Assembly: GCA_024704765.1 (NCBI GenBank)
Contig: JAKMXF010000353.1
Span: 62,001 to 126,000 of the forward strand
Length of the DNA stretch: 64,000 nucleotides
Reading direction: 5' to 3'
DNA from: Oopsacas minuta
Taxonomy: Eukaryota; Animalia; Porifera
Positions 1,081 to 19,909 of the stretch are shown here, one piece after another (position 1 is the first letter of the stretch; every line of letters starts with the position of its first letter). A program made the position numbers and the translations under genes. The notes under the pieces were generated by a model that saw only the letters and a program-made list of their open reading frames with translations, ran no database searches and had not been told where the DNA came from.

Positions 1081-4000
1081 GCGATTATTGACAAATCTCC
1101 CCGAGAACCTCAAAGAGAGGTCTCAGAGCCCCCCGTAAATCTACACCAATGTTTAGATGCCTTTTCAAGAGAGGAGGAGTTAGGGGGAGATGAAATGTGG
1201 TAAGTTCAGACACCCTTGCTAATTTTATAATTGAATTAACTATATAAGGCCCTGTTAATAAGAATCTTGTTTCATCTCCGTATGACATCCCTCTAAGCAT
1301 GCAGGGGAGGAAGCATTCCATATTTCATTATTTATGACGTCCTCATAAGATAAAGTGTCCAATTCATGGAAATATTTCAATGAAACAAATTCCAACTAAC
1401 AGCAGCCTTATATACGTATTTTCACACCTGTATATTAGGTATTGTAAGAAATGTGAAGACCTACGATCAGCTACTAAGAAATTAGAGATATTCAGATTAC
1501 CCCCATTTCTTGTGAGTTAATTTAATAATACGATAAAAGGAGTACATAACACCTTCTAAAGGGGTGTCTTGGGACCCGAATATGGTAGCCTCCACAACCG
1601 GTGCCTCTGGAAACGGGGGAACTTCTGGAACGAAGTTAAAATCAATACAGCCAACTCCTAATTTCATACAAATGAACCTTCACAAACCGGGTTACATTGT
1701 GTGTACATACTTAGATTACTGTGGGCCCTCTCTAATTGTCCACTTCGAACCCCATTGTCTACTGATAGACAATTAGAGAGGACCCACTGCTTGTATAATT
1801 GTCGGTAACACACCGCTGGGTGTCAAATGTGATAGTTATATGATTATTTAAAATATAGATAATTCACTTGAAAAGATTTCAATTCTCCAACGGACGTTGG
1901 GCCAAATCTCAAATTCCAGTAACTTTCCCGTTTGAGAATCTCCAACCAGTACCAAATGATGGAGAACAAGCTAATGCACCCCAGCAACCAAACTCTGAGA
2001 TTAGAATGTTGGAAGCTACTAATGATGAAATTACACCTATTGGTGATGGTAATATATTTTCTTATTTTTTGACACCTTTCAATAACTCATCCGTTCCCAA
2101 CCTATTCCACACACTGACCCCTGTGCCAATTCTAAAATATTATGTAGACTACACCTTGGGAACGCTGCTTGAGTTTGGGGCAGGACCATCTATAGTCAGT
2201 CCCGCAAGGAGTGGCGTTCATTAAATGAGATGCTAACCTATTTTCTAAATATTTGTGTCTTTACAGATAACGCTGAGATGAACACAAAACCAGCAAAACT
2301 CTCACCTATAGAACTCCAACCAATAGAAGATCACACCTCAAGAAATAAAGTCTACGATCTATACGCTATGACGGTGAGTAATTAAACTGTACTCCGCTAA
2401 TAGGGTCACATCGGACCAGACCAATTTGGCCCCATTAACCAGTGGCTCTATTAAGCAGAGTCTACTGTGATTATGTTTATAAATATTCTAAATTCCTTAG
2501 ACACACTATGGTTACCTAGGAGGAGGCCATTATGTATCATTCGCGAAAAGTAATCAAGACAATAATTGGTATTATTACAATGATTCTTCGTGTAAAGTGA
2601 GTTACTATTATTTATTGCTCTCTGCTACTCAGCAGGACTGTATTGATAAGTCTTTAGGTGTCAAATTGGGCTCACTAGCGTCGATGGGGACATGTACCAC
2701 CCACAAATTTTACCGCTAATAAGTACACAGGCGACCATTTCGTCATATCAGACATTCTGGGTCTCTGATATTTATTCCAGTGGGGCTCACAAGGTGTCAA
2801 TTCCTGTCCACATTGGGTACGGTCAGACAACAATTGACCCTTGCGGACTATTATAAATATTGAAATAATAAATGAAGGCAGATATATATATAAAGGTGTG
2901 AATTAGTAATCTAACTCCCTTAAAATCTGAGCAATCAATTCGCTTACTCGTTCTTCTTCAAGATCAGTCCTATCTCTTGTTTTATTTTGACATAATCTTT
3001 TAACACCCCCAGGTGTGAAAATATTATATTTCACACATTCCTGAGTGATCGCGCGCTTTAATTTTAGATATTCTAATTCCTGAGTTGGTGTCAATTTCTC
3101 TTGATTCGGTAATGACTTCATTTCGGTTGGTTCCAGTTCCAATTTGAATGTTTCACCCGGTTTGAACTCTGCGTTTTCATTGGTTACATCAGTTTCACAT
3201 TTAGTTCCATTTGTGATATCTTTAGTTCCAGTTTGTTCTTCTAATTGATTTTCTGAAATATTAAATGTTTCGTTTAAGTTAACATTCTTTAATGCAGTAT
3301 TGGTTGCTAGGTCGGATAATGTAATATCTTCACTAGAAAGTACAGAGTCATGGTCTGGATCAGAACTATACTCAGATTCAGTTCTGGTTTCCTAAAAGAA
3401 GCAAAAAGGTGTGAAAATATTATTAATCATATGGTAAATCATGCAAACAGAGATTGGAAAATATCAAAATTGAATTCTACATAACTGATTACCCCTAATA
3501 GCCGTTGAAACGATATTCAAGCATCATTTTGAGTTCGGCCCAAAATGTGTGAAAATTGATTATTCATATGATTAATATTTATATTTACACACCTCAACAA
3601 CCAATGGAATTACATGTTACAGGGGATCCCAAATAGGAAATTTAATATTTTTGTTATTCAAACTTGTAAATTATACCAAATAAGTTTGCTGAGAAAGATT
3701 TTCAACCACATTCCTTACAGTATCCTAGCAACGAGACACAATAACATACACCTGCATAACCTCGTGTTCATTCTGTAAATAATATACTCACATCATCTTA
3801 TTATTGTTGTTTTTGTTGTTACAAAAATCAATTCATACACAACCATAAATACACAAGATTATCCCTAGCAACCAATTCCTATATCAACTATTCAAATATT
3901 CTTCTAATAACCAATCAAATGGCAGAAAGATATCCAATAGCCCCTCAAGTTGTCGACCCCATAGAGACACACATCAACTACACAATAGATGGTCTCATAG

Positions 4001-7000
4001 GGCTACTGAATGTACGCAGAGTTCAGTTGCTGGAGAAAGTCCGTAACATACGTGAGGAGAAGAGAGCCTCAGAGATCACGAGACAACAAATGATCGACCA
4101 ACTGATAGAAGCACAGGTACACCTCCAAGAAGACATAAGAGAAAATCCCCTCCAGTCGATGCACGAGAGAATTGTACGAGAAATGGAGGACAAATTACGA
4201 GACCTGCAAAATAATATCCCCGTAGAGACCCGATTAAAGTGGAAGTGTGACACACGTGACCTAGAAACGAGCATTTCCCGTCTAGGAGAGATTGTACTTG
4301 TACCAGTAGGAGTACCAGATTATGCTAAATTCCAAACTTCCACTGTTGCTACTGGGGAGGAAGGTATAGGTCCTGGCGAGTTGATTGCTCCATACGGTGT
4401 AGCTATACATGAAGATACACACCAAATATTCGTAGCTAATAGTTGCCATAACAGAGTAGAGATATTCTCTGATACAGGAGAGTACCTCAATCAGCTGGGT
4501 GTAGGACAGGAGTATACGCCATACGGTATAGCTATACACAGAGAGAATGTGTATGTCAGCTACGTGGGAGATCACACTATTAACCAATTGACACTAACTG
4601 ACATGAGTATTGTTAGGAAGATAGGAGGTAAGGGATCAAACAACGGACAATTCAAATATCCTAGACAACTAACAACAGATCCCATTGGTCACGTGTTTAT
4701 AGCAGATGGTGGTAACAACAGAATCAGTATACACGACACAGACCTGAACCATCTCCGTAACATTACTCATCAGTCAATGTCAGGACCAGTTGATGTTAAA
4801 GTGTCACGTGACCGCGTGTACGTACTGTGTCCATCTAACAACCCGTGTATGCACGTGCTAACCCTAGAGGGAGACAAGCTACACTCCCTCATTACCAAAG
4901 GACAAGGAATGGATGTGTTATGCCCTGTCTTCTTCTGTCTAGATCCACTTAACAACTTTGTTATTAGCGATAGATACTCTCACTCAATTCGGGTATTCTC
5001 TCCAGAAGGCAATCTCCTACACACTATAGGAACAGAGGGACACCAACAAGGAATGTTCTATAAACCCCAAGGAATAGCTATAACTCCAAACGGGAGATTA
5101 GTTAGTGTATCAGGGAATGAGAACTACCCTCTACAAATATATTACTAATTTGTTTGTTAGTTTGTTTGTTGTTATTTATTTAATTAAAACTCACACTTTT
5201 CTGGTTTTCCAACTTCTTTTCATTAATCTTTTCCGTGTTAAAATATAATTGTCTTATTTTAGACTTAACGTGTTGGTATTTAACATTCCTTTGCATACGT
5301 TTGGTTGCTAGTTGAGTTGCACACACACTTGTTACTAAAGATGGAAAATTTGTTGTTTTACCCAAACATTCCATTCTCGAGGTGTGTTTCCAGGGAATTG
5401 TTGTTGTTGTTGATGTTGTCTTTCGCGAAATTGCTTGTTTTCCCGTTTTAGTTATGCGTGTTTTGCTAAGCGATCGGTTGCTATGGCAATGCTCTAGTTT
5501 AAACAATTCTGAGAATTCCTGTCCCTCTTTCAAATCTTCAAAATCTATAATTAGTAACAAATTAATATTTTCCGAGCAAAATATACTCAAATTTTGAATG
5601 AGAAATGTAGCCAGAAATTGCCCAATAGGGCTTAGACCAAGTACCCCTATGGGAACTAAAAACACCTTTTAGACATCTGTTAATGAGAAACTTGTTTCAG
5701 CTCCCCTAATGTCTATCTAAGCATGCAGCTGGGAAGGCAGCAATTCATGGAAAAACCCAATGACTCTACTTCTAAATACACTGAGTCCTCTCTAATTGTC
5801 CACCAGTGGTCAATAGGGTCCGAAACGGACAATTAGAGAGGACATACTGATGTTAATTAAGCGTGTTAAAGGAGGTCTGTGGATATAAATCACTATTATT
5901 CACCCGTTAGTTAGTAAATATATTGTGTAATTGAATTTCCAATAATGACACTATTCATGTGACAGATAAACTTGATGCGGGCGGTGGAGCTGAAACAAGT
6001 TTACAACCAACAGTGGCCCTTGTATAACTTACAATTTTGTGGCAGTTGAGCATTCTCCAATTCAATTAATAGCTCATTTTTGGCGGGTAACTTAAATCTG
6101 TCACGTGACCGAATACAGCTAACAGCTGATTTAGGAATTGAGGTGTCAATCCTTGATTTTGCGGCTGTTATTCTCTTAGTGTGATTAGCCATGTGAGAAT
6201 CTATCAGCTGATGTGTATATTTGTTGTATGCGACAGGTGTGAAAGGATTCATTTTCAGTTTAAGTTGTTCATCTTTGGAAATTGGTCTCATTCGTATTTG
6301 CGGCATTTTTGTAAAAACTAAAATATAGATTTGGGAAAAGCTGCTTTAATATGAATTATTCTCCCAGACCGGACCAGGGAGAGTAACCTCACCCCCCAGA
6401 GGGGATTCACAATACATATGTTCACCTGCTGTAATATCCTAAAAATATTAAAATAATCCTACATTCCATTCTACTAATAATAGAACAAGCTAATTAACCA
6501 ATCAATTCTAAGCATTTACTTCCTATCATTTCTCTATACGTTTCCGCTTGTTCAATTTCTTCAGAAACCCTGCATTCTGACTGGTCAGGTAGACACATGC
6601 TCTTCTCACAGCTGTTTCAGTCAGTCTAGGCCTATAATGACGTTTCTTTAGAATTTTACGGATCGACTTGTAGACCGCTCTTCTGTTTTTGTTTAGACGG
6701 ATTCGAGTGTGCATCGTTTTGGGACGTTTGGAATGTTTAGGTCGTTTGAGTGACAACACGATTCCACCTTCGGAATGTGGTTTGATACCAATAGTCTTCC
6801 TTGGGACGCTGCCACTGAATTTCTGTGAGTGTTTGTTAGTTAAATTATTGGGTTCTTTTGAAAATCGGAATTTTCCACTTTGAACAATAAATTTAGAGTT
6901 TCTACGTAGAATACTCCATTGTACGTCTTGAGACATTTTATGCTAATTCAGAAATTGGGATTTGAATTACAATAAACATTTAACACCTGTCATATCTGAG

Positions 7001-7699
7001 CTCGAGGGAGCTGATAATTCCTTCGAAATAACCAAGGAAGTTATATGTTTTGCTTTGACAATTTGGGACCATGTTTGTATAATATCAGACTTGGATATAG
7101 GCGGGTAATTCAATATATCCGTGTTGGATATAACTGGAGTTAACTGGAGTTAACTGGAGTTGGCTGTAGTTTACTTTTCTTTGAAAGAAAACTAAGGAAT
7201 TTATACACAAATATGATAATTCTGCCAAGCGAATGAAAATGAGAATACAGCCTATTTTGGGCAGATAGCAAGCTGGTATAGTTTCACTGGGATCCATAGG
7301 GTCCATATAATGTTTTAATAACGGTCGTGAACCGCTAGTTTAAACGGCCCACTTCAATACACGTACCATGGGGCCTATAGCCGTATAGCCGATAAGAACC
7401 TTGTGACACTAGTAGCGGTCCTAGGAGAGCAAACAGGGCATTTCCCCTTGAGTGATACCCTTAAAATACAAGAGGGCAATTTTACGAGACCGAATTTTGA
7501 GTAAATTTCTTATTTTTAGCGAACAGGAGAAGAAAAGGTAGCAAAAGAGCCGGCATACCTGTTATTCTATAAACAACAGGGAGAACTCAATATTGACAAA
7601 ATTAGTGGGGATCTTCATAATTTCGAAGATGAACCTGACAGTGATGACGAAACAGAAGAGAAAGCTGATCACCCTAGACCCAAGTGTTTTCCGATGTAA
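1081..7699 (+). CDS. USP32: USP32-like ubiquitin-specific protease, 3' part; exons 1081-1199, 1439-1511, 1859-2048, 2267-2373, 2501-2596, 7520-7699; 5' exons not found in the window
   Basis: All junctions are GT-AG and phase-compatible. Spliced protein reads PVNLHQCLDAFSREEELGGDEMWYCKKCEDLRSATKKLEIFRLPPFLIIHLKRFQFSNGRWAKSQ...YDLYAMTTHYGYLGGGHYVSFAK...WYYYNDSSCK|RTGEEKVAKEPAYLLFYKQQG...KCFPM*, covering the USP His box and terminal AYLLFY box, and resembling the USP32/USP6 C-terminus. Confidence 0.88.
1721..1787. repeat. Hairpin/MITE-like repeat (CCTCTCTAATTGTC...GACAATTAGAGAGG) in a USP32 intron
   Basis: 14-bp perfect inverted repeat at 1727-1740 and 1768-1781; the same arms recur at 5785-5843 and near 16918-16975. 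Confidence 0.75.
2903..6306 (-). CDS. SPATA7: SPATA7-like ciliary protein, 370 aa; exons 6306-6033, 5544-5195, 3391-2903
   Basis: Exon 1 HQLIDSHMANHTKRITAAKSRIDTSIPKS resembles the SPATA7 N-terminal block. Exon 3 QELEYLKLKRAITQECVKYNIFT...RL...DLEEERVSELIAQILREL resembles its C-terminal block. Phases match (274+350+489 = 1113 nt). Family call is by motif recognition, not a search. Confidence 0.75.
3919..5148 (+). CDS. Intronless NHL-repeat beta-propeller protein with N-terminal coiled coil (TRIM-like, no RING or B-box), 409 aa
   Basis: Repeats such as PYGVAIHEDTHQIFVANSCHNRVEIF, FKYPRQLTTDPIGHVFIADGGNNRISIH and FYKPQGIAITPNGRLV are NHL blades; the N-terminal ~110 aa are helical. Confidence 0.9.
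   Translation: MAERYPIAPQVVDPIETHINYTIDGLIGLLNVRRVQLLEKVRNIREEKRASEITRQQMIDQLIEAQVHLQEDIRENPLQSMHERIVREMEDKLRDLQNNIPVETRLKWKCDTRDLETSISRLGEIVLVPVGVPDYAKFQTSTVATGEEGIGPGELIAPYGVAIHEDTHQIFVANSCHNRVEIFSDTGEYLNQLGVGQEYTPYGIAIHRENVYVSYVGDHTINQLTLTDMSIVRKIGGKGSNNGQFKYPRQLTTDPIGHVFIADGGNNRISIHDTDLNHLRNITHQSMSGPVDVKVSRDRVYVLCPSNNPCMHVLTLEGDKLHSLITKGQGMDVLCPVFFCLDPLNNFVISDRYSHSIRVFSPEGNLLHTIGTEGHQQGMFYKPQGIAITPNGRLVSVSGNENYPLQIYY
5668..6012. mobile_element. Dispersed non-autonomous element with subterminal inverted repeats (AAACTTGTTTCAGCTCC) and an internal 17-bp hairpin, in SPATA7 intron 1
   Basis: Near-identical inverted copy at 16749-17133; inverted repeats at 5688-5704 and 5986-6002; hairpin at 5785-5843. 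Confidence 0.8.
6526..6936 (-). CDS. RPL28: 60S ribosomal protein L28 (eL28), intronless, 136 aa
   Basis: MSQDVQWSILRRNSKFIV...FSKEPNNLTNKHSQKFSG...RKTIGI...YRPRLTETAVRRA follows the eL28 pattern (QW..R..S.F...EPNNL...YRP.L...A.RRA). Confidence 0.93.
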   Translation of the reverse strand: MSQDVQWSILRRNSKFIVQSGKFRFSKEPNNLTNKHSQKFSGSVPRKTIGIKPHSEGGIVLSLKRPKHSKRPKTMHTRIRLNKNRRAVYKSIRKILKKRHYRPRLTETAVRRACVYLTSQNAGFLKKLNKRKRIEK

Positions 7700-7936
7700 C
7701 ACAAACAACAACAAACATTTGTAGATATCTTTTATAAGTCTATAATGCTTGTATGTATAAAATTGAAATCTTAAGTTCTTTTAGCTAATAGTGATTAGAC
7801 CAATTATGATAGTTTATTATTTCCTCAAATTTTTGGGGAGGTCTCACTGGGAGGGTCTCTGGTCAGCCCCGGGTCTGCGTGATCCTACGAATCGCCTGGG
7901 GAATTTGGTCGCCCGTGGCGGCCATTCTAGATATTA

Positions 7937-8173
7937 TACAAGACTGTGGAATTGATATATCGAAGCTTAAGGAACCGTGATAATTACTCCGATATAACCG
8001 ATAAAAAATACAATAAACTCCCGTCAGATCTAACACTGATAAATCGAATACCCGCGGATATCGAATTTCTGCAAATAAGGTCCCAAAACGTCAAAGTAAC
8101 AAATATTCCATTAGTTATATTGAAGTGATTATCACGGCTCCCTTGAGCTTAGATATGACAGGAGTTGATTGTA
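7937..8173. mobile_element. Tc1/pogo-like MITE family member (TA-flanked CARTCAACTCC end)
   Basis: Inverted arms ATATCGAAGCTTAAGGAACCGTGATAAT and ATTATCACGGCTCCCTTGAGCTTAGATAT; related end fragments near 6990-7030, 12245-12310, 27585-27625, 29508-29550 and 38435-38490. Confidence 0.65.
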
Positions 8174-8338
8174 CAGCGATTTTTCTAAATAAGAACTGTT
8201 ATGATAGAATATTAATAATATAAAACAAACTACAGAAGTGAACGTGTGAATATAAATGTAAATCAAACTATATTACAAAAGTCAAAACAAGCAAACAAAC
8301 AAACAAACACACACACACCACACGCTAAAACAACAAAC

Positions 8339-11300
8339 TCACACAACATCAATGCTAAATGGACTCCCATAAATGTGTCCTGGTTCATCTTCATCACCCC
8401 ATAATAGTTCTAATATATAGTTCCCTTTCTCTGTAGCTACAAATGAAACTGACATTGTGCCATCTTCATTTTTCATTAAGGACATTTCTGCTTTAGTTCT
8501 GCCTGATAATCTGGCACGTAGAGGCCCAGGTCCTGCCCCCTCTCCTAATAAATTGTAATGTCTCAGAAAGGTGTTATAATGTGTATATTCAATTAAATTA
8601 TAGATAAACCCTCGAATCTGATAGGGTGACACATTTTGACACCAATCTCAGAGAGTTGAGAGATATCGTTTAGAAATTATAACAAGTTCCTAGATACGAA
8701 ATACTCCACAAATATGCACAGTTTCAAGTTTGTAACTCTTATAAGTTCCTCAATAAATTCGAATAAACAAACAAACAAACAAATAAACTAACAACTAACC
8801 AGCTAATATTTTATAACTCGTCAGTTGGTTTACTTTAACTTCCTTCTCAAACCCAACAGCTGTAACTTTCTTCGTATCTCTAATAGCTATTCCTATCACA
8901 TGTGCAATGAATGGTGACCCGCTTATATGTTGTCCACCCCATGTAGCTTGTATAGTATAGTCCCCCGGGGCAACAGGAAGGTATTTCACCTTCATGACAC
9001 CGTCTGAAGGGGTGATAACTATTGGGCCAGCTGGGTAGGGTCCTAGTACAGACACGGATAGCGGACCTGGTCCTGCATCTTCATCAATGTGTACCTAAAC
9101 AGTTAACAAAAACATAAATAGAAGTGTTTTTTTGAGGCTATATTAAATAATTAATACAAACCTCGAATTCTGCGGGAACATTGACCTCTCCTTGGACAAT
9201 TCCGTCCCCTGTAGTGGTACATAAGGTCCCGTCAGACACCCTACTCTCTCCTAGCACCTCAACACCCATGGGGAATCCTGGTATATCACAATCTCCCCAT
9301 CTGAGATGGATATCATAGTGTCCAGCGTCTCTGTAAAAACGAATAAGATAATTTCCTTTACTACACTACAGTATCCATGGTAACAATATGGATCCCATGG
9401 GGCAACTATATGTAAGTCAGTGGGTCTGTTTCATGGGAAATTGGTCTACTCAATGGGACCATATTGGACAATGGATAGTCTACTGTCGTCAGTGGTCATA
9501 TCCATGTTCAGTTAAATATGTATCAAGTATCCATAGTCCACTAATACAATTCTAACCTGCATGTATATGTAACGGTAATACTAGAATCCTCCGCTTCCTC
9601 TGCAACTATCCTTGGCTTCGTTGGCCCAGCTATCTTTATAGACAGAGGGCCAGCACCCGCGCCTGAGATAGGAATAACCTGGATACGAAGTGGTTCATTG
9701 GTATTTCCTCCTTTCAAACCATCACCTTCTAATTTGAGCTTTGAAACATCATTTTTGGTTTCTCCACCAATATTGACAAGGAATGGCGATCCTACAGATC
9801 CATCATCCATGGTTAATTTTCTTATACTCACATAGGAGGAGGAAATTTTTGCGAAAACAGTAGCCTATATCTGAAATTATAATTAGCCAGAGGTGTGAAA
9901 ATATGATTAATCATATTTGGTTCAGTTTACCACAAAAAAACACCATTTATCAGCTGGCATAAAGTGTCGGTATATGTATGAAGGTGTGAAAATATACATG
10001 TATAAATTTACATACCAGCTATATGAGCTTCTGCCCAGATAATCTTAACCTTATACTGTCCAGGTGAAGTTGGATGGTAGCTGACATAAATTATCTTATC
10101 CTCTTCTATCATTTCTATCGGTTCAGCTTTGCTTGGACCAAGAATATGCACTCTTAGACGAGCGACTACTGCCTCTGGACCACACCGTATGACAAAGTTA
10201 CATGTTTCACCTGTAAACAAAATAATAAACAACAATAAATCACATTATTAGCCATACATAATATCAAACCCCTCCAGTCTGATTGGTGAATACATTTTGT
10301 CACCTTTTCGCAGGGTTGTGTGAATATTTCCGTTAGATATTTATAAATTTCAAAATGACACCATTTTCACACATACACGTGCCAAATTTTAGCCTCACCC
10401 CTTGCTGGGGTGTTAAGTTATATCTTTTTAAAATATGAATATTTTATCACCTGTATTTCCACTAATAAGCCCCATTCCATCAGCTGTACATTTGTCAGTA
10501 AACTCAGCAAAATCCACTTGGTTATAGTAAGGTGACTTAGGAATGTGTTGTCCTGCAACCTAGATACAGAAATGGAGAATTGACACGAATACTAATAGAC
10601 ACTGAATTCGTCCGCTCTATCCGGTGTTCGTATTATCGACTGTATGAAGAAATAAAGAGGTGTTAAGAACTGGAACTAAGTGATTAACGTACAGTAGACA
10701 TCGCTTAATAGGGTCGCTTTGGGACTATACATTTTTTGCCATATTAATCAGAGTCTACTGTATTTACAAAACAAAACACAAACACAAACACAAACACAAA
10801 CAACCTTAATTTCAATTGTGTATTCGCCAGCAACTTTAGGCGTAAACTCAACACGAATCCTGTCACCTGATTGGCTAATATCAGTAGAATTAGGCCCAGA
10901 TGGACCGATAACATTCACGGTTACATCAGAGGGGATCAAATCTGTTCCTGAGATTTGGAACCAAGTTTTCTCGCGTGTCCTCAGGGTTCCTGTGAGTCCG
11001 GGACCTTCGGCTTTGCATCGGTGACTCGTGCCGGCGTCCGCTGGAAGGGGTCCCTGAAGGTCTGACCCAGTAGCTACTTGATTAAGGTCAGAGAGGAGAT
11101 CATCTAATGAGCTTGCAGTCTCAGAAACGGGAGGGGGAATTGGTTTGGGTGGGGGAATAACTGCTGGAGGTGGAGGTTTATTCGGTGATTTGATTGGTTG
11201 AGAGGGATAGGCTGATCGCTCTGGGATAGGAGGGCCTATAAATAGGAGAAAATATATTAACTTTCCAAAGGTAATCCCGAGAAATTAGTAAAAGGTTAGG

Positions 11301-13186: not shown

Positions 13187-13642
13187 TCAAATCCAGACAG
13201 GATAATTCCTCTGCTTTGGTAGAATACCAGTTTTGACTCCGGCGTCTTTCCATGCTAGTATGATCTTATCCAACACCTTTCTTGTAGCTTCCTGACACTC
13301 AATCGGGACAAATACCCCTGATTCATATTCGCATACTCCATTCACAATCCTGAAAGCGTCCCCAACGACATTATCCGGTATGACTTCAAAATCAAACAAG
13401 TAATAAAACGCGAGACGATGAAGGTCCCCGCCAAATTTTTCGGGCCCTTCCATCTGCATAAGGGTATTTACGTCCATCAAGGCCGTGTAGCCTGATTTAC
13501 ACTTACGGCCGTTTAGAAACCACTGTTTCTGACCATTAATCTCATATACGATACATCCAACATATGAATTGTCCGAATTGAAGCTGTGAGAAGCACATGA
13601 GAGATGCATAGTGTCAAGTGGCTTTTCTGGGCATTCAGCCAT
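13187..13642 (-). CDS. Intronless 151-aa protein of unknown function
   Basis: Real ATG with a TATATAAATATATA box just upstream, protein-like composition, GC higher than the flanks; no family recognised. Confidence 0.7.
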   Translation of the reverse strand: MAECPEKPLDTMHLSCASHSFNSDNSYVGCIVYEINGQKQWFLNGRKCKSGYTALMDVNTLMQMEGPEKFGGDLHRLAFYYLFDFEVIPDNVVGDAFRIVNGVCEYESGVFVPIECQEATRKVLDKIILAWKDAGVKTGILPKQRNYPVWI

Positions 13643-14922
13643 TTGTATGTGTTATATATTTATATAAGCTATAAATATCAACAAGCTTATTTGTTTATTT
13701 AGAATATGTAAGGGATCACAGGATCTCAAAATTGGTATCGCAGTCTATGGGAGTGTCCACAGTCCACTGAAAGTGTTAAAAATGTCGGGATTAAAAGCTA
13801 AGTGGTCGTTATGTAGAAGTGGCAGCTGTAGACACATATTGCCAACACTGGAAATCGCCTTAGTATCCCAGGGTTATTTATACCCACATGCATATTCTAG
13901 GGAATTTGTCAATATTGGGCGATTCTTACTTCATTTTAGGGATCCCAAAATTACAGTTGGAACCGTTGAGGGTACACAGTTGAGTAACTTCAATGACGTA
14001 CATTTGAATTTCGCCGTGTGTACAAAATCCTAACTGAAACCATTCACAAATACTCATTGAATTGTCTCATTAAAGTAAACAAATATGTTTGTTTACAACT
14101 TCACGTGTGAGACAATCTATTGTTTACAGTGCATAGTAGGAATTGTTGTCTTTAATTCTGATAATATGGACATAGCCAGAACTAAATATGGAAATATAAA
14201 TGTCAATTACTAAATATAGTGGCAGTTTAGTGGCAGTTTAGTGGCATTATAAGAATCCTGTTCACAAATCTTAGAAGTGTACTATTACATACAGAAAACT
14301 TGTATTCGGGCGAGACGGTTGGTCATCATTTCTTAGAGTAAGATATCGCTTCCATATTGAGTTAGAGTTTAAGAGACTTATGTGTCAATTTTCAGCTGGT
14401 GACGCCTGCCAAATCTGCAATCAACCCCGATCAATACAGACCCTTGTTTATGACAAGAATCATGCATAAGTGATTAAAATTACTCTGATAAATACAGGTT
14501 GCTAGGGTCGGAATTATTAGCAGGCCCAACGTAATTATAAATATGCTAGCACTAATTTTTACACATTCTGTGGACCCCTCCCATAGAGTGCAATACAAAT
14601 TGTGAGATCTTGTGGACCCCATGATGATGTCCGTGTATCACCAATGGGTCCATGACGCCAGGTTGAGATACCTGGATTATACAAAAAAGGTGTCAATATT
14701 GAATAAAAATCTTAGAATACTTTTAACTATATAAGGTGATGAAAGTGGCCTTTATGAAATTAGAGGAACATTTTGAAGAATTCAAATAGTTTTGTCATAA
14801 TGCCCACAATTCCAAAGAATAAAATGATAATATATAAACTCTCAAAGAAAGCCAGAAGCCAATGACACAAAAGAAATTAAACTCAAATATTATGCCACCG
14901 AAAAGTGTCAGCTACGTGACAC

Positions 14923-14930
14923 TATATAAA
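14923..14930 (+). promoter_or_regulatory. Putative TATA box of the MBL-fold gene
   Basis: TATATAAA about 33-40 nt upstream of the ATG at 14963. Confidence 0.45.
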
Positions 14931-14962: not shown

Positions 14963-15997
14963 ATGCAGAACTTACTTCAGATAATTTTGTTGTTGACAAC
15001 ATTATCCGCTTTTGGAAATGCTATTCAAATCGTGGACATCAACCTGGACGATACACAGCCCCAATATGTCCAAAACCTCGGTCTTATGCCAAACCCAGAT
15101 TCCTATCTTCACATTTACGCGTTACCCGTTGGTGACGGAGACTCCACTCTGATCCAGTGCCCTGGCGGCGATCTAATAGTGATCGACATGGGTACCAATT
15201 CGGCTGGTTCAGGATGGTCTCCTTATCAAGTCAAAACTTGGTTGGGTAATAATATAAACTTCATAAGCACGATTGTTGTCACGAAAGCGAGTAAAGATCA
15301 CTACAATTATCTTCCAACTGTACTCAAAGACAATATGAATATGAACCGTATCATTTTAGGAGGGAAGAGTTCAGACTACACAGGCAATGAATTCGTAACT
15401 TGGGTGAACCAAAGGGCACACGTTAGAGAATATGTGAATAATCAAATCCCTTGTATAACTAATTGTAAGACAGATCCACCCCAGTGTCAAGGTAGTAACG
15501 GGACAGTAAAATTCAGATTTTTAGGGGCGAATCTTGGATCGGATGCGGCGGGCAGGAGTATACTATTACAGCTGTCTGTTGGTAACAGTTTTAAACTATT
15601 TTTCCCAGGGGATTTCCAAGGAACAGATATTGAGGATTTGGTTATGAATGAATGGATTTGGATGGGAAGTTCGATTGAATCGACACATTACAAGATGTCA
15701 AACAGAGGTACTGGACAGAACTCAAACAATTTCGAATTTCTGAAGGCAATACGTCCCAAATACGCTTTCACAAGCAGTCGCTATCCGAGTAAATCATACG
15801 GACCGGAGTGTAGCACAATAAACCGACTTCTCTCCGTTGGAACGATTGGAAAACGGTCAAATTCTGGTAGATACGCTTGCTACAACTCAAATGCAAAAGC
15901 TACGATGCAGTATGATAATTGGGTATATGACATTTACACAACATCACCGTATCCCAGTCAGATTGAAATTCTTCAAATTGATGTCCCCATATATTAA
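14963..15997 (+). CDS. Secreted ComEC/Rec2-type metallo-beta-lactamase-fold protein with degenerate metal site, intronless, 344 aa
   Basis: First ATG is at 14963 (the ORF track starts at a TTG). Signal peptide MQNLLQIILLLTTLSAFGNA. ComEC-type motifs appear in order: LPVGDGDSTLIQ, IVIDMG, VVTKASKDHY, RSILLQL, FFPGD, YKMSNRG, IRPKYAFTS...YGP. Confidence 0.82.
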   Translation: MQNLLQIILLLTTLSAFGNAIQIVDINLDDTQPQYVQNLGLMPNPDSYLHIYALPVGDGDSTLIQCPGGDLIVIDMGTNSAGSGWSPYQVKTWLGNNINFISTIVVTKASKDHYNYLPTVLKDNMNMNRIILGGKSSDYTGNEFVTWVNQRAHVREYVNNQIPCITNCKTDPPQCQGSNGTVKFRFLGANLGSDAAGRSILLQLSVGNSFKLFFPGDFQGTDIEDLVMNEWIWMGSSIESTHYKMSNRGTGQNSNNFEFLKAIRPKYAFTSSRYPSKSYGPECSTINRLLSVGTIGKRSNSGRYACYNSNAKATMQYDNWVYDIYTTSPYPSQIEILQIDVPIY

Positions 15998-16748
15998 CAA
16001 TTTTCACACCTTGTGTTCATTTTTGATACCACATTATTTTGTCACTAGTAAACTGTGTTTGCATACTTCATTAAACTCCAATAGATGTAGTGTATTTTTG
16101 AATAAGGGGTTTTCGTCCGAACCAAAAACTCTTTTCGGAATTTCTGTGAGATTTATTAAGACAATCAGGATTTGTTTGTCAGATTAAATGGGCATTTCTT
16201 TCGGGTATAATTTTTAGTTTTGGCGCCTTAAATTTGTCCAAATTCTAAATATAGTAACAACTATGAGAAATGCTTAACAGATAATTAATAGCAAAAATAA
16301 CCTGTAATTGTTTTCTGTATATATTCGCCGGTAAAAATGTGTAAATATAACAGCCCAAGGGTGTTGACAAGTGGAACCATAAACAGCAATAAACATTGAA
16401 TTATTGTATTCAAATCTTGATAACATCTGCTGGCATTCAATCGCGAGACAATAGGCCACTTTCCAACCATATGGCCACTATTAGAGCCACATTATCAATG
16501 AGATTAGTAATCATAGAAATGTGTTTATGAGAACTTTGAATAAATGTAATACACTATTCACCTGATCCTCATGTCAACTACTAATGATTACCCAAACTAT
16601 GATATGCTTTTCAAATCGGGCTTCGATCGACTTTATATTGAAACCATATCGAAAATACGACGTATCTGCCGCCATATGGCTGATACAGGCTTCATAGAAT
16701 GGTATTACGTGAGTTTAGAAAGGTAGTAATAGGAATTGATAAGGCCAA

Positions 16749-17133
16749 TGTTGGTTGTAAACTTGTTTCAGCTCCACCGCCCGCATCAAGTTTATCTGTC
16801 ACATGAATAGTGTCATTATTGGAAATTCAATTACACAATATATTTACTAACTAACGGGTGAATAATAGTGATTTATATCCACAGACCTCCTTTAACACGC
16901 TTAATTAACATCAGTATGTCCTCTCTAATTGTCCGTTTCGGACCCTATTGACCACTGGTGGACAATTAGAGAGGAACAACCGTATTTGGAAGTAGAGTCA
17001 TTGAAATATTTCATGAATTGAACACTTTGTATTTATGATAACTCACAAAATAATGAATTGCTGCCTTCCCAGCTGCATGCTTAGATAGACATTAGGGGAG
17101 CTGAAACAAGTTTCTCATTAACAGATGTCTAAA
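16749..17133. mobile_element. Second, inverted copy of the element at 5668-6012
   Basis: About 230 nt (16749-16975) is the near-exact reverse complement of 5785-6012, and 17055-17133 matches 5668-5745. Confidence 0.8.
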
Positions 17134-17671: not shown

Positions 17672-19909
17672 CTAATTTTCACTGTCCTGTCTTTGTTCCT
17701 CGGATAACCGTGCTTCCAATGCTGCCATGTCTTTCATTAGCGTTTCCAGATTCTCTTTCAAATGAATATTTTTCGTCATCTCTTCCTCAAGGGCCCTTTG
17801 AACTTTACGGAACGATTCGTCTTTGTACTCGTCGTCTTCGGGTATTACGAAATTCAAAAGTTTTCTAGAGACAGATTTATTAGGAGTTGGGCTAGTAACC
17901 TTAGGATTTAAATCTGCTTTATGACTGACAACATATGTCTTAATTATGGATTCCTTTCGTAGCAAATCGTTATTAAGGGCGGAATTTGAATCTTCTAAGT
18001 GGCTGCATTTTTCTTCAAGAATCCATTTCTGTTGCTGAATGGTTGTAAGTCTATCGATCAAATCCTTGGTCTCTTCTTGTATAGGAGTCTCATTGAGGGT
18101 CAAATTGGAGCTGGATTTATTCCAGGACAGAGCGCTGTCACAATTCCGTCCAATCGACACGGACTCTTGCTCGTCGCCCATACTCTCTGTAAAACTTGTC
18201 TGTCTTAGCTCGCTCATTTGTTCTTGGAATTTCTGGCAACGTTTTTGTTCATGTAAAAGTTGCTTTTTGAGTTCTTTTATCATTAAAAGATTTCTCTTTT
18301 CTCCGATTCTGAAACTTAACTTCAGTTCTTCTTTCTCCTGACCGAATTTAAGAATGAATCTTTCCTTCTCATCTACAGTTTGTGACAATTCTGACACTTC
18401 TTCATTCAGAACTCCAACCTCCGATTCATGAATCGCCCTTACTTCTTTAATTTCTTTCTCTAAAACACTTTTCGTTTCTGAGATGCCATTTTCAAGGGAA
18501 GCGATTTTACTCTCCAATTCCTCTCTCTGAATTTCGAGTTTTTTGACAGTTCTCTCTTGGTTCAGACGAACCTCAAGTTGTTCCTTAAGGTCCCGGATTT
18601 GTGTTTCCAGTCGAACTCTTTCATCTTGGTATTCAGCAATCATAATCTCATTGGATCGATTTTTCTCATTCAATTTCCCGAATAAGTCCTCAATTCTAAT
18701 CTGGTTTTCAATGGATTGTTCGTCTAACATTGCCTTACGACTGTCAGCGAGTTTTTGAGCTTGCCCGTAATCACACTGCAATCTATGTAGGTCGCTATTT
18801 GCCTTAGAAATTTCATCTTGTAACACACCCACCTTATCAATATTACTTTTCAACTCGTCTTGGAGGGTTTGATTCTCTTCGCCTCGTTGGCTGAGGCTTT
18901 GACGTAATTTTTCAGTGTGTTCGATTGCTGATTTCAGTTTTTCATCTATCGTGTTTTTCTCGGTATTCAACGCGGCGATCGTTTCTGTCTCTTTTTTGGA
19001 ATCTCTTCGAAATTTTTGACGTTCGCTTTTTAGAGTTTCAAATTCTTTGACAGTTTCTGGGTCGACTAGCGCAACTTTTGAGCGCATTTTTTCTAATTCC
19101 TGTTCTAATGCAATTACTTTGCCGCTTGAATTTAGTGTAATTAGTTCTTGTTTCAAATCTGATTCGGTCAATTTTTCGCGGGAAATATTCAATTCTTTTT
19201 TCAGATTCTGAGTTTCAGTTTGAGAATTTTCTAGTTTCAGTTTCAGTTCATATTGAACTAATTCTTTCTCATTTTGCAGAGCTATAATTAGTTCTTGTTT
19301 ATGTTCAGTTTTTAACTCCAATTGTTTGACTTGTCCCTGCAATTCCGATACTAAATCGTCATATTTTTGTTTACTTTCAGTCAGCTGTTTAGTCAACACC
19401 CTATTCTCTTCAGTTTGTGTTGCGACTTTTAATTCCAATTCAGTGTTCCCTGTTGCTTCGGAATCGCCATCCTTTTGAAATGAACTTTTTAAGACCGCAT
19501 TTTCCGCTCTCAAATGCAATAATTCTTCCTCCAAAACTTTGAATTCCTCGACAGTACCTCGACCGTCTTTGGAAAGGCTCTTTTTCAATTTATCATTCTC
19601 CTCCATGGCATTGGCGAGCTCGTTCAGAAGGGTTTGATTCTGTTGTGTCGCGTTTTGTTCGAATTCTGTCACAGTAGCATGCATTCTATCGTAATCATCT
19701 TGTAACACCTGAACATCTTTAGCTTTCTTACTCCTACTGATCGCCCGATTAGCTCTCTCACACTCCCTGTCAAGCTGAGAAGTCTTTTCCTTCAACCCTT
19801 TGTTCTCTTCAGTTATTCGTACTATCTTATCTCTTAAATCATAGTTCTCAGTCCGTAGCTGTAACAGGTTCCCCTGCATACGCATCAATTCTTCTTCCTT
19901 CACTTCCAT
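17672..19909 (-). CDS. GRIPAP1: GRIP1-associated protein 1 (GRASP-1) homolog, intronless coiled-coil protein, 745 aa
   Basis: N-terminus EEELMRMQGNLLQLRTENYDL...AISRSKKAKDV and C-terminus RLTTIQQQKWILEEKCSHLE...LLRKESIIKTYV...LEEEMTKNIHL match the two conserved GRIPAP1 blocks. Confidence 0.87.
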   Translation of the reverse strand: MEVKEEELMRMQGNLLQLRTENYDLRDKIVRITEENKGLKEKTSQLDRECERANRAISRSKKAKDVQVLQDDYDRMHATVTEFEQNATQQNQTLLNELANAMEENDKLKKSLSKDGRGTVEEFKVLEEELLHLRAENAVLKSSFQKDGDSEATGNTELELKVATQTEENRVLTKQLTESKQKYDDLVSELQGQVKQLELKTEHKQELIIALQNEKELVQYELKLKLENSQTETQNLKKELNISREKLTESDLKQELITLNSSGKVIALEQELEKMRSKVALVDPETVKEFETLKSERQKFRRDSKKETETIAALNTEKNTIDEKLKSAIEHTEKLRQSLSQRGEENQTLQDELKSNIDKVGVLQDEISKANSDLHRLQCDYGQAQKLADSRKAMLDEQSIENQIRIEDLFGKLNEKNRSNEIMIAEYQDERVRLETQIRDLKEQLEVRLNQERTVKKLEIQREELESKIASLENGISETKSVLEKEIKEVRAIHESEVGVLNEEVSELSQTVDEKERFILKFGQEKEELKLSFRIGEKRNLLMIKELKKQLLHEQKRCQKFQEQMSELRQTSFTESMGDEQESVSIGRNCDSALSWNKSSSNLTLNETPIQEETKDLIDRLTTIQQQKWILEEKCSHLEDSNSALNNDLLRKESIIKTYVVSHKADLNPKVTSPTPNKSVSRKLLNFVIPEDDEYKDESFRKVQRALEEEMTKNIHLKENLETLMKDMAALEARLSEEQRQDSEN

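Follow-up and report, generated by a model that had tools for sequence, protein, structure and literature searches.

Hexaxilin-2 of the glass sponge Oopsacas minuta: a catalogued hexaxilin with a ComEC-type metallo-beta-lactamase fold and a worn metal site

How does a sponge come to have an intronless gene for a secreted-looking protein that resembles the nuclease domain of bacterial ComEC, and what could such a protein do once most of its metal ligands have gone? The question is raised by an open reading frame at positions 14963-15997 of a 64,000-nucleotide stretch of the Oopsacas minuta genome (contig JAKMXF010000353.1, positions 62,001 to 126,000; assembly GCA_024704765.1), the whole of which is called the window here. 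A first-pass annotation, made from the letters alone, had seen in it an apparently catalytically dead protein of the ComEC type with a metallo-beta-lactamase (MBL) fold, possibly of bacterial derivation, and had advised a comparison with hexaxilin, a protein of the spicule axial filament. The frame is the hexaxilin-2 gene of this glass sponge, and it had been catalogued earlier. That hunch was therefore exact, by accession, by sequence match and by tree.

The frame runs without interruption on the forward strand from an ATG at 14963 to a stop at 15995-15997 and comprises 344 codons plus the stop. The public gene call over it measures 1035 bp, that is, 344 x 3 + 3, which means one exon; the number of joints inside the coding sequence is zero in each of four sequencing runs, and the claim that the gene is intronless is borne out. 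Letter for letter, the translated protein equals KAI6646802.1 (100% match), annotated on the same contig. Supplementary Data 1 of the study that described the family lists this accession for Oopsacas minuta as Om_6646802, Hexaxilin-2, of 344 amino acids (Shimizu et al. 2024, Nat Commun 15:181, PMC10772126), and the source alignments of that study hold an identical sequence (PMC10772126). A word-based protein search returned the protein itself and nine relatives at 43-73% identity, among them the entry 'Hexaxilin-2 [Euplectella curvistellata]' of the nr database at 72%. The assembly is that of a hexactinellid, as expected for a member of the family. The link to ComEC and the MBL fold, the worn metal site, the six cysteines and the non-catalytic, structural reading are all in print, and nothing in them is new.

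The position within the family is clear. In an unrooted maximum-likelihood tree of 62 sequences (30 hexaxilins, 8 'hexaxilin-like' proteins and 24 Pfam-MBL sequences, mostly bacterial), the hexaxilins make up one side of a branch with a support of 99 in the Shimodaira-Hasegawa-like approximate likelihood ratio test (SH-aLRT), and the O. minuta protein falls in the clade of E. curvistellata Hexaxilin-2 (SH-aLRT 98-99). Eight paralogue types are common to the Hexasterophora, and more distant, hexaxilin-like proteins have been described from demosponges, calcareous sponges, jellyfish, annelids, a brachiopod, a tunicate and a few protists (PMC10772126). The orthologues of hexaxilin-2 in Euplectella curvistellata (Ec_35669), Vazella pourtalesii (Vp_11014), Rossella fibulata (Rf_7250) and Aphrocallistes vastus (Av_491) are 66-73% identical to it over the full length and alike in length, in the six cysteines and in the worn motifs (TK-x-S/N-x-DH, NRG, SGP/YGP); the O. 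minuta protein differs in having Y279 where the orthologues have S and A109 where they have G. Hexaxilin-1, as known from silica in E. curvistellata and V. pourtalesii, is 40-46% identical and has the same fold, the same cysteines and the same layout of signal peptide and propeptide. A tblastn search with ten hexaxilins revealed no second copy or pseudogene in the 64-kb window. Weak matches at 8924-9121 on the reverse strand (E about 3-4) lie inside a filamin gene and were taken as chance.

In three further assemblies from glass sponges, a hexaxilin-5-clade paralogue and hexaxilin-2 were found on contigs of equal size (P0030/P0006, P0032/P0002 and P0034/P0003, on contigs of 1,641,220, 1,958,998 and 487,689 bp, respectively), so that the two genes may be linked there; in O. 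minuta, hexaxilin-2 and the hexaxilin-5-clade paralogue are on different contigs.

The layout of the gene product can be summarized as follows.

14963-15997, forward strand: coding sequence of hexaxilin-2, 344 codons plus stop in a single exon, identical to KAI6646802.1 (Om_6646802), no joints
14963-15022, forward strand: putative signal peptide, residues 1-20, in which the hydrophobic core spans about residues 5-17 and the small residues G-N-A precede the likely cut (by eye)
15023-15082, forward strand: putative propeptide, residues 21-40, from alignment to the mature ends of hexaxilin-1
15083-15994, forward strand: MBL-fold globular domain, residues 41-344, with six conserved cysteines and one N-x-T site (N179), from model and alignment

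The hydrophobic core and the G-N-A that follows it give the N-terminus the look of a signal peptide on inspection, and in this respect the secreted appearance noted earlier holds as far as the eye can judge. For hexaxilin-1, signal peptides (1-19 aa) were predicted with Phobius (PMC10772126). Without its first 20 residues or so, hexaxilin-2 would have a mass of 36 kDa and an isoelectric point of 6.1, with one N-x-T site. We infer a mature end at M41 (MPNPDSYLHIY...), because this is where the protein aligns with the Edman-sequenced ends of hexaxilin-1 (FPAPDGNLHIY... and FPKSDGNLHI). The six cysteines of the mature part, which had been pointed out before, are C66, C164, C168, C175, C283 and C306. 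All of them lie past the signal peptide and are invariant in the 30 hexaxilins that we compared, in agreement with the published finding that they are identical in all hexactinellid hexaxilins (PMC10772126).

The resemblance to ComEC is weak by sequence and strong by fold. A Pfam scan of hexaxilin-2 gave no family even at E 10, including Lactamase_B (PF00753), a family that is matched by a more distant relative (P0024) and by the bacterial relatives. The ComEC/Rec2 profile of NCBIfam (TIGR00361) is matched at E 6.2e-5 over profile positions 440-632 of 663, with 21.3 bits against a curated cut-off of 190, which is thus not reached; in a sequence search of the PDB, a ComEC chain appears at E 0.07. 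An AlphaFold2 model built from ten homologues has a mean predicted local distance difference test score of 84.9 and a predicted template-modelling score of 0.85, with low confidence before about residue 30. In a Foldseek search of the PDB, this model best matches the beta-lactamase-like domain of Moorella glycerini ComEC (9ic4, E 4.7e-11); at least 189 PDB chains have an E of 0.001 or lower, and the matches listed are MBL-fold proteins, which identifies the fold as the alpha-beta/beta-alpha sandwich of that superfamily. With VIA-align, 246 residues can be superimposed on 9ic4 at a Z of 22.8 and a root-mean-square deviation of 2.9 A, covering residues 46-344 of the model. The next family, the pneumococcal phosphorylcholine esterase Pce/CbpE, follows about 4 Z units lower, at a Z of 18.9, and a Z of about 15 is reached by the RNase J / CPSF73 group. 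Judged from the model, hexaxilin-2 is a stand-alone MBL-fold domain of about 300 residues and has its nearest counterpart in the nuclease domain at the C-terminus of bacterial ComEC, which sustains the earlier identification of the fold although the sequence profile is weak. A relation of hexaxilins to MBL-fold proteins including ComEC (CDD COG2333) was described by the authors of the family (PMC10772126).

The order of the motifs in ComEC/Rec2 (PDB 9ic4 and 30bt; TIGR00361, COG2333) is the same as in hexaxilin-2, including the GDGD and Q-C-P blocks. However, ComEC forms a polytopic channel in the membrane, is about 700-800 amino acids long and has an intact two-metal nuclease site, whereas hexaxilin-2 has no membrane domains: only the signal-like segment precedes its MBL domain at residues 46-344. 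It has a secretion-type N-terminus and five extra cysteines, and it has lost five of the eight residues of the site. The four regions in question are the following.

15281-15301, forward strand: remnant of MBL motif 2, T-K-A-S-K-D-H, residues 107-113, where bacterial relatives have H-x-H/D-x-D-H
15608-15613, forward strand: retained GD aspartate, G216-D217, invariant in 62 of 62 sequences
15701-15709, forward strand: remnant of HHG, N247-R248-G249, both histidines gone, where 32 of 32 bacterial and hexaxilin-like sequences have HH
15797-15805, forward strand: remnant of YGHP, Y279-G280-P281, histidine missing; a gap or a non-histidine residue is also found in other hexaxilins compared

Eight positions are nearly invariant in the hexaxilin-like and Pfam-MBL groups of the 62-sequence alignment, namely H108, D/H110, D112, H113, D217, H247, H248 and the histidine of G-H-P. 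The first two of these, H at 108 and D/H at 110, are present in all 32 bacterial and hexaxilin-like sequences; in hexaxilin-2 they are replaced by K108 and S110. Only D112, H113 and D217 are retained, three positions out of eight, so that the intact ligand set of ComEC (H-x-H/D-x-D-H, GD, HHG and GHP) is absent from the protein. The eroded motifs described in the first-pass annotation (TKASKDH, NRG and YGP, with the GD aspartate kept) were all recovered where it had placed them. Substituted metal ligands and a probable loss of metal binding have been reported for the hexaxilins in general (PMC10772126).

From the alignment, the loss of ligands appears to be graded across the paralogues, which is a small refinement of the published picture. 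The hexaxilin-3 clade (seen through Ec_7726, Av_158 and Om_6650172) has seven of the eight positions, with H-A-D-R-D-H and S-H-H-G, and lacks only the HP histidine. Hexaxilin-5 keeps H108, H113 and one histidine of HHG, while hexaxilin-1 and -7 keep H113, D/E112 and one histidine of HHG. Hexaxilin-1 is thus slightly less worn than hexaxilin-2: its NHG preserves one of the HHG histidines, and its motif 2 reads N-x-T-x-DH. The most worn sites are those of the hexaxilin-2 clade and its sister clade. In the hexaxilins compared, the position of the G-H-P histidine is a gap or a non-histidine residue.

Hexaxilin-3, the hexaxilin-like proteins of other sponges, cnidarians and annelids, and the unlabelled metagenomic relatives P0023-P0027 and P0037 are stand-alone MBL proteins of similar size that look secreted, and most of them share the cysteines 164, 168, 175, 283 and 306, which are absent in bacteria. 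They are probably still metal enzymes, to judge by their motifs. Hexaxilin-like sequences have the full ligand set and most of them carry the five cysteines absent from the bacterial proteins; secretion and disulfide bracing would therefore have preceded the loss of the metal site. No hexaxilin-like protein has ever been found in skeletons, and hexaxilin-3 was reported as the earliest-branching type (PMC10772126). It could be imagined from the graded loss that these proteins were recruited to the skeleton before catalysis was lost, that some hexaxilins are still metallo-hydrolases in the silica deposition vesicle, and that the whole family goes back to one ancient transfer of a bacterial stand-alone ComEC-type hydrolase; as a combined scenario, this is a rather improbable speculation.

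A few related sequences from other sources can be recorded here. Two metagenome scaffolds (L005 388-1593 and L006 1265-2665) encode hexaxilin-like proteins with signal-like N-termini, and P0023-P0027 and P0037 have N-termini of this kind as well. In these metagenomic proteins the H-x-D/H-x-DH, HHG and HP motifs are intact, and the cysteine pattern is mostly that of the hexaxilins; P0023 has a long, Cys-rich N-terminal extension. The contigs on which they lie have a low, eukaryote-like coding density. In the Bryobacterales, contig JBBROU010000106.1 (L003 2653-4368) encodes a stand-alone MBL protein of 571 amino acids with an intact site (SHADKDH, GGHHGA), which shares V-Q-C-P-G-G-E-I-I-L-I-D-C-G with the hexaxilins and has a long C-terminal extension.

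With regard to function, the reference point is hexaxilin-1, which was identified by Edman sequencing in the insoluble part of the spicule silica of two species and was immunolocalised to the axial filament (PMC10772126). In Vazella pourtalesii, hexaxilin-1, -2, -5b and -8 are upregulated at high silicic acid (PMC10772126). On this basis, hexaxilin-2 would be a secreted MBL-fold protein that serves as a non-catalytic constituent of the axial filament, a reading to which we assign a probability of roughly 85%. It agrees with the earlier proposal of a non-catalytic structural protein, in view of the membership of the hexaxilin family and the loss of five of eight ligands. Its mode of working can be sketched by analogy with hexaxilin-1, the sole member isolated from silica. 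Hexaxilin-2 would enter the secretory pathway and reach the silica deposition vesicle of the sclerosyncytium; the signal peptide and the short propeptide would be removed, giving a mature protein of about 34 kDa that begins near M41. This protein would fold into a rigid globule with up to three disulfides and pack with itself, without catalysis, into the proteinaceous axial filament, and the filament would set the symmetry of one spicule class and nucleate the first silica. Different spicule shapes would be patterned by the eight paralogue types.

The sequencing runs suggest that the gene is maintained and used. Comparison of the contigs of runs X2-X4 with the window revealed a single allelic substitution in the 1035 coding bases, a synonymous change at 15067 (T>C, TAT to TAC, Tyr35), as against 19 in 1963 bases upstream and 8 in 403 bases past the stop, so that the density in the flanks is 10-20 times that in the coding sequence. 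Hexaxilin-2 is under purifying selection. The depth of run X4 has the shape of genes: it amounts to thousands at 13187-13642 and to 758-2756 over the hexaxilin coding sequence, remains at about 480 up to about 16263, falls below 10 past 16340 and is high again from 17676, where a gene of 745 codons starts. This profile looks like that of RNA and suggests that hexaxilin-2 is transcribed, with a 3' untranslated region of about 270-340 nucleotides. The transcriptional signals around the gene would then be as follows.

14923-14929, forward strand: TATA-like heptamer TATATAA, candidate core promoter, 34 nucleotides before the ATG
15998-16340, forward strand: probable 3' untranslated region, with ATTAAA at 16070 and 16183 and AATAAA at 16388; from X4 depth, the end being approximate (contig-level data)

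The heptamer that had been called a TATA box is present at the place indicated; it recurs at 14728 and 14831, and taken alone it is weak promoter evidence.

Several points weigh against a role of hexaxilin-2 in the filament. Recovery from silica and localisation have been achieved for hexaxilin-1 alone (PMC10772126), the one member for which presence in the filament has been demonstrated; the authors themselves concede that the antibody against it may bind other proteins, and a silica-forming activity has been demonstrated for no hexaxilin (PMC10772126). The assignment of hexaxilin-2 draws on homology and on how the gene responds to silicic acid in another species, and its signal peptide, propeptide cut and disulfides are themselves inferred. 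As to expression, the kind of run that X4 represents is not on record, contig depth is a poor measure that cannot prove transcription, and the upstream spacer, too, is crossed by an X4 contig of ordinary depth. It could be imagined that hexaxilin-2 is a secreted protein outside the filament, which either binds a polyanion, DNA or a phosphorylated matrix in the remnant of its pocket or acts as a single-metal hydrolase by means of D112, H113 and D217. The conservation of pocket residues across the hexaxilins, with H113 and D217 invariant and D/E112 common, hints that the pocket is still in use, and the second structural neighbour, Pce/CbpE, is itself a secreted esterase; the recovery of hexaxilin-1 alone from silica also leaves room for such a function. 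Nevertheless, we consider it quite unlikely, given that five of eight ligand positions have gone, among them the two HHG histidines and motif 2's first histidine, that hexaxilin-1 and hexaxilin-2 both respond to silicic acid in V. pourtalesii, and that the six-cysteine framework and overall length of hexaxilin-2 are those of hexaxilin-1.

The filament reading says nothing about where the gene came from, and an ancient transfer, which concerns origin, does not conflict with it. The statement that hexaxilin-2 was horizontally acquired from bacteria is not supported in the form in which it was made: the gene resides among animal genes, its synteny is conserved, it belongs to a shared paralogue family, and members of that family have introns. 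It is hardly conceivable that the gene represents DNA of bacterial contaminants or an insertion of very recent date in the assembly, as the missing intron and the bacterial type of fold might suggest. It lies on a contig of 160,821 bp among genes for filamin, RPL28e, talin and an NHL protein, its depth equals that of its flanks in three DNA-like runs, and a high-copy repeat of the sponge is adjacent to it. In another hexactinellid, the orthologue likewise adjoins a gene of the same type as the 745-codon neighbour (745/747 amino acids, 65% identity over the full length) and talin, and paralogues occupy other animal loci, for example beside a Six homeobox gene and a kinesin gene. Contamination and recent insertion are excluded on these grounds. 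The lack of an intron is no evidence of transfer either. It is common among hexaxilins in the compact O. minuta genome, where hexaxilin-7 is also single-exon, and is not a trait of the family, since hexaxilin-5b of O. minuta has three exons and the homologues of Capitella and Oikopleura have several.

An ancient transfer is a different matter. A stand-alone bacterial MBL hydrolase of the ComEC type could have entered an early eukaryote or animal, where it gained a signal peptide and disulfides, the metal site being lost later in the glass sponges. By language-model features, every one of the nearest large clusters consists of bacterial stand-alone proteins, either 'ComEC/Rec2 family' or MBL, with lengths of 280-366 amino acids; the best solved structural neighbour is bacterial ComEC, and the stand-alone MBL protein of the Bryobacterales has a QCPGG-x-I-x-ID-x-G block in common with hexaxilin-2, at 35% identity over residues 54-150. 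In the BLAST table of the original study, the best bacterial match scores 107 bits, on a par with the 87-123 bits for demosponge, cnidarian and protist matches, and the eukaryotic distribution is patchy, with the family absent from choanoflagellates (PMC10772126). On the other hand, our tree separates the hexaxilins and hexaxilin-like proteins from the mostly bacterial Pfam-MBL sequences (SH-aLRT 92) and, being unrooted, indicates neither nesting nor direction, while the published tree leaves a polytomy, and the view preferred by its authors is descent from protist ancestors (PMC10772126). Two alignment-based word searches yielded more hexaxilins, a few hexaxilin-like proteins and unlabelled MBL proteins; most of the non-hexaxilin sequences in the tree have no taxon label, and with so few taxon names it cannot settle the donor or the direction. 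When the family alignment was used to scan bacterial and archaeal genomes, a single locus was confirmed, in a Bryobacterales metagenome-assembled genome, which is too few for an argument on transfer. The introns in several members, the host-like G+C content (41% in the coding sequence and 37% in the window) and the conserved synteny rule out a recent event; that relatives exist in which the metal site is intact and the cysteines are the same, and that some members have introns, also means that any transfer was not recent. Horizontal transfer of hexaxilin-2 is thus unproven, and the ancient transfer is a possible but doubtful history.

The surroundings of the gene deserve a short description. 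Its neighbours are RPL28e, a filamin-repeat gene, a gene of 151 codons, the coiled-coil-like gene of 745 codons, the NHL gene and talin. The 151-codon gene (13187-13642, reverse strand) is annotated and has the highest X4 depth (4,000-12,000); it may encode a very highly expressed small orphan protein. The 745-codon gene (17672-19909, reverse strand) consists of a single exon, and its product is rich in Glu, Lys and Leu. A Pfam scan of these two neighbours gave no match. One further feature lies outside the hexaxilin gene.

16743-17133, no strand assigned: copy of a dispersed repeat, inverted with respect to a copy at 5668-6018, 96-100% complementary

This is the flanking repeat that had been reported as shared with the region 5668-6012. 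In the DNA-like runs, the copy at 16743-17133 has a depth of 2,000-10,000 and many joints, compared with 70-300 in the single-copy flanks; the repeat is high-copy in the sponge, and the locus therefore sits in sponge DNA. The repeat is about 390 bp long and its right-hand copy, which is the one that the reads cover, has 10-35 times the single-copy depth, which suggests a high-copy O. minuta element resembling a miniature inverted-repeat transposable element. The pair of copies brackets about 10.7 kb with four genes, probably by coincidence.

Silicatein, the axial-filament protein of demosponge spicules, is a hydrolase fold with an altered catalytic centre that was recruited to the skeleton. 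It has an unrelated fold, that of a cysteine protease of the cathepsin-L type, and belongs to another class of sponges, so that it is an analogue of hexaxilin and not a homologue. Hexaxilin-2 of O. minuta is an already catalogued member of its family and adds nothing new to the story of the skeleton. Its value lies in an independent check of the published assignment, through fold, clade, synteny, constraint and likely transcription, in a count, residue by residue, of what each paralogue retains of the metal site, and in putting the idea of a bacterial transfer in a testable form. As a family, the hexaxilins show that unrelated proteins went into the silica skeletons of glass sponges and of demosponges, and they bear on the timing of animal skeletons and on bio-inspired silica synthesis.

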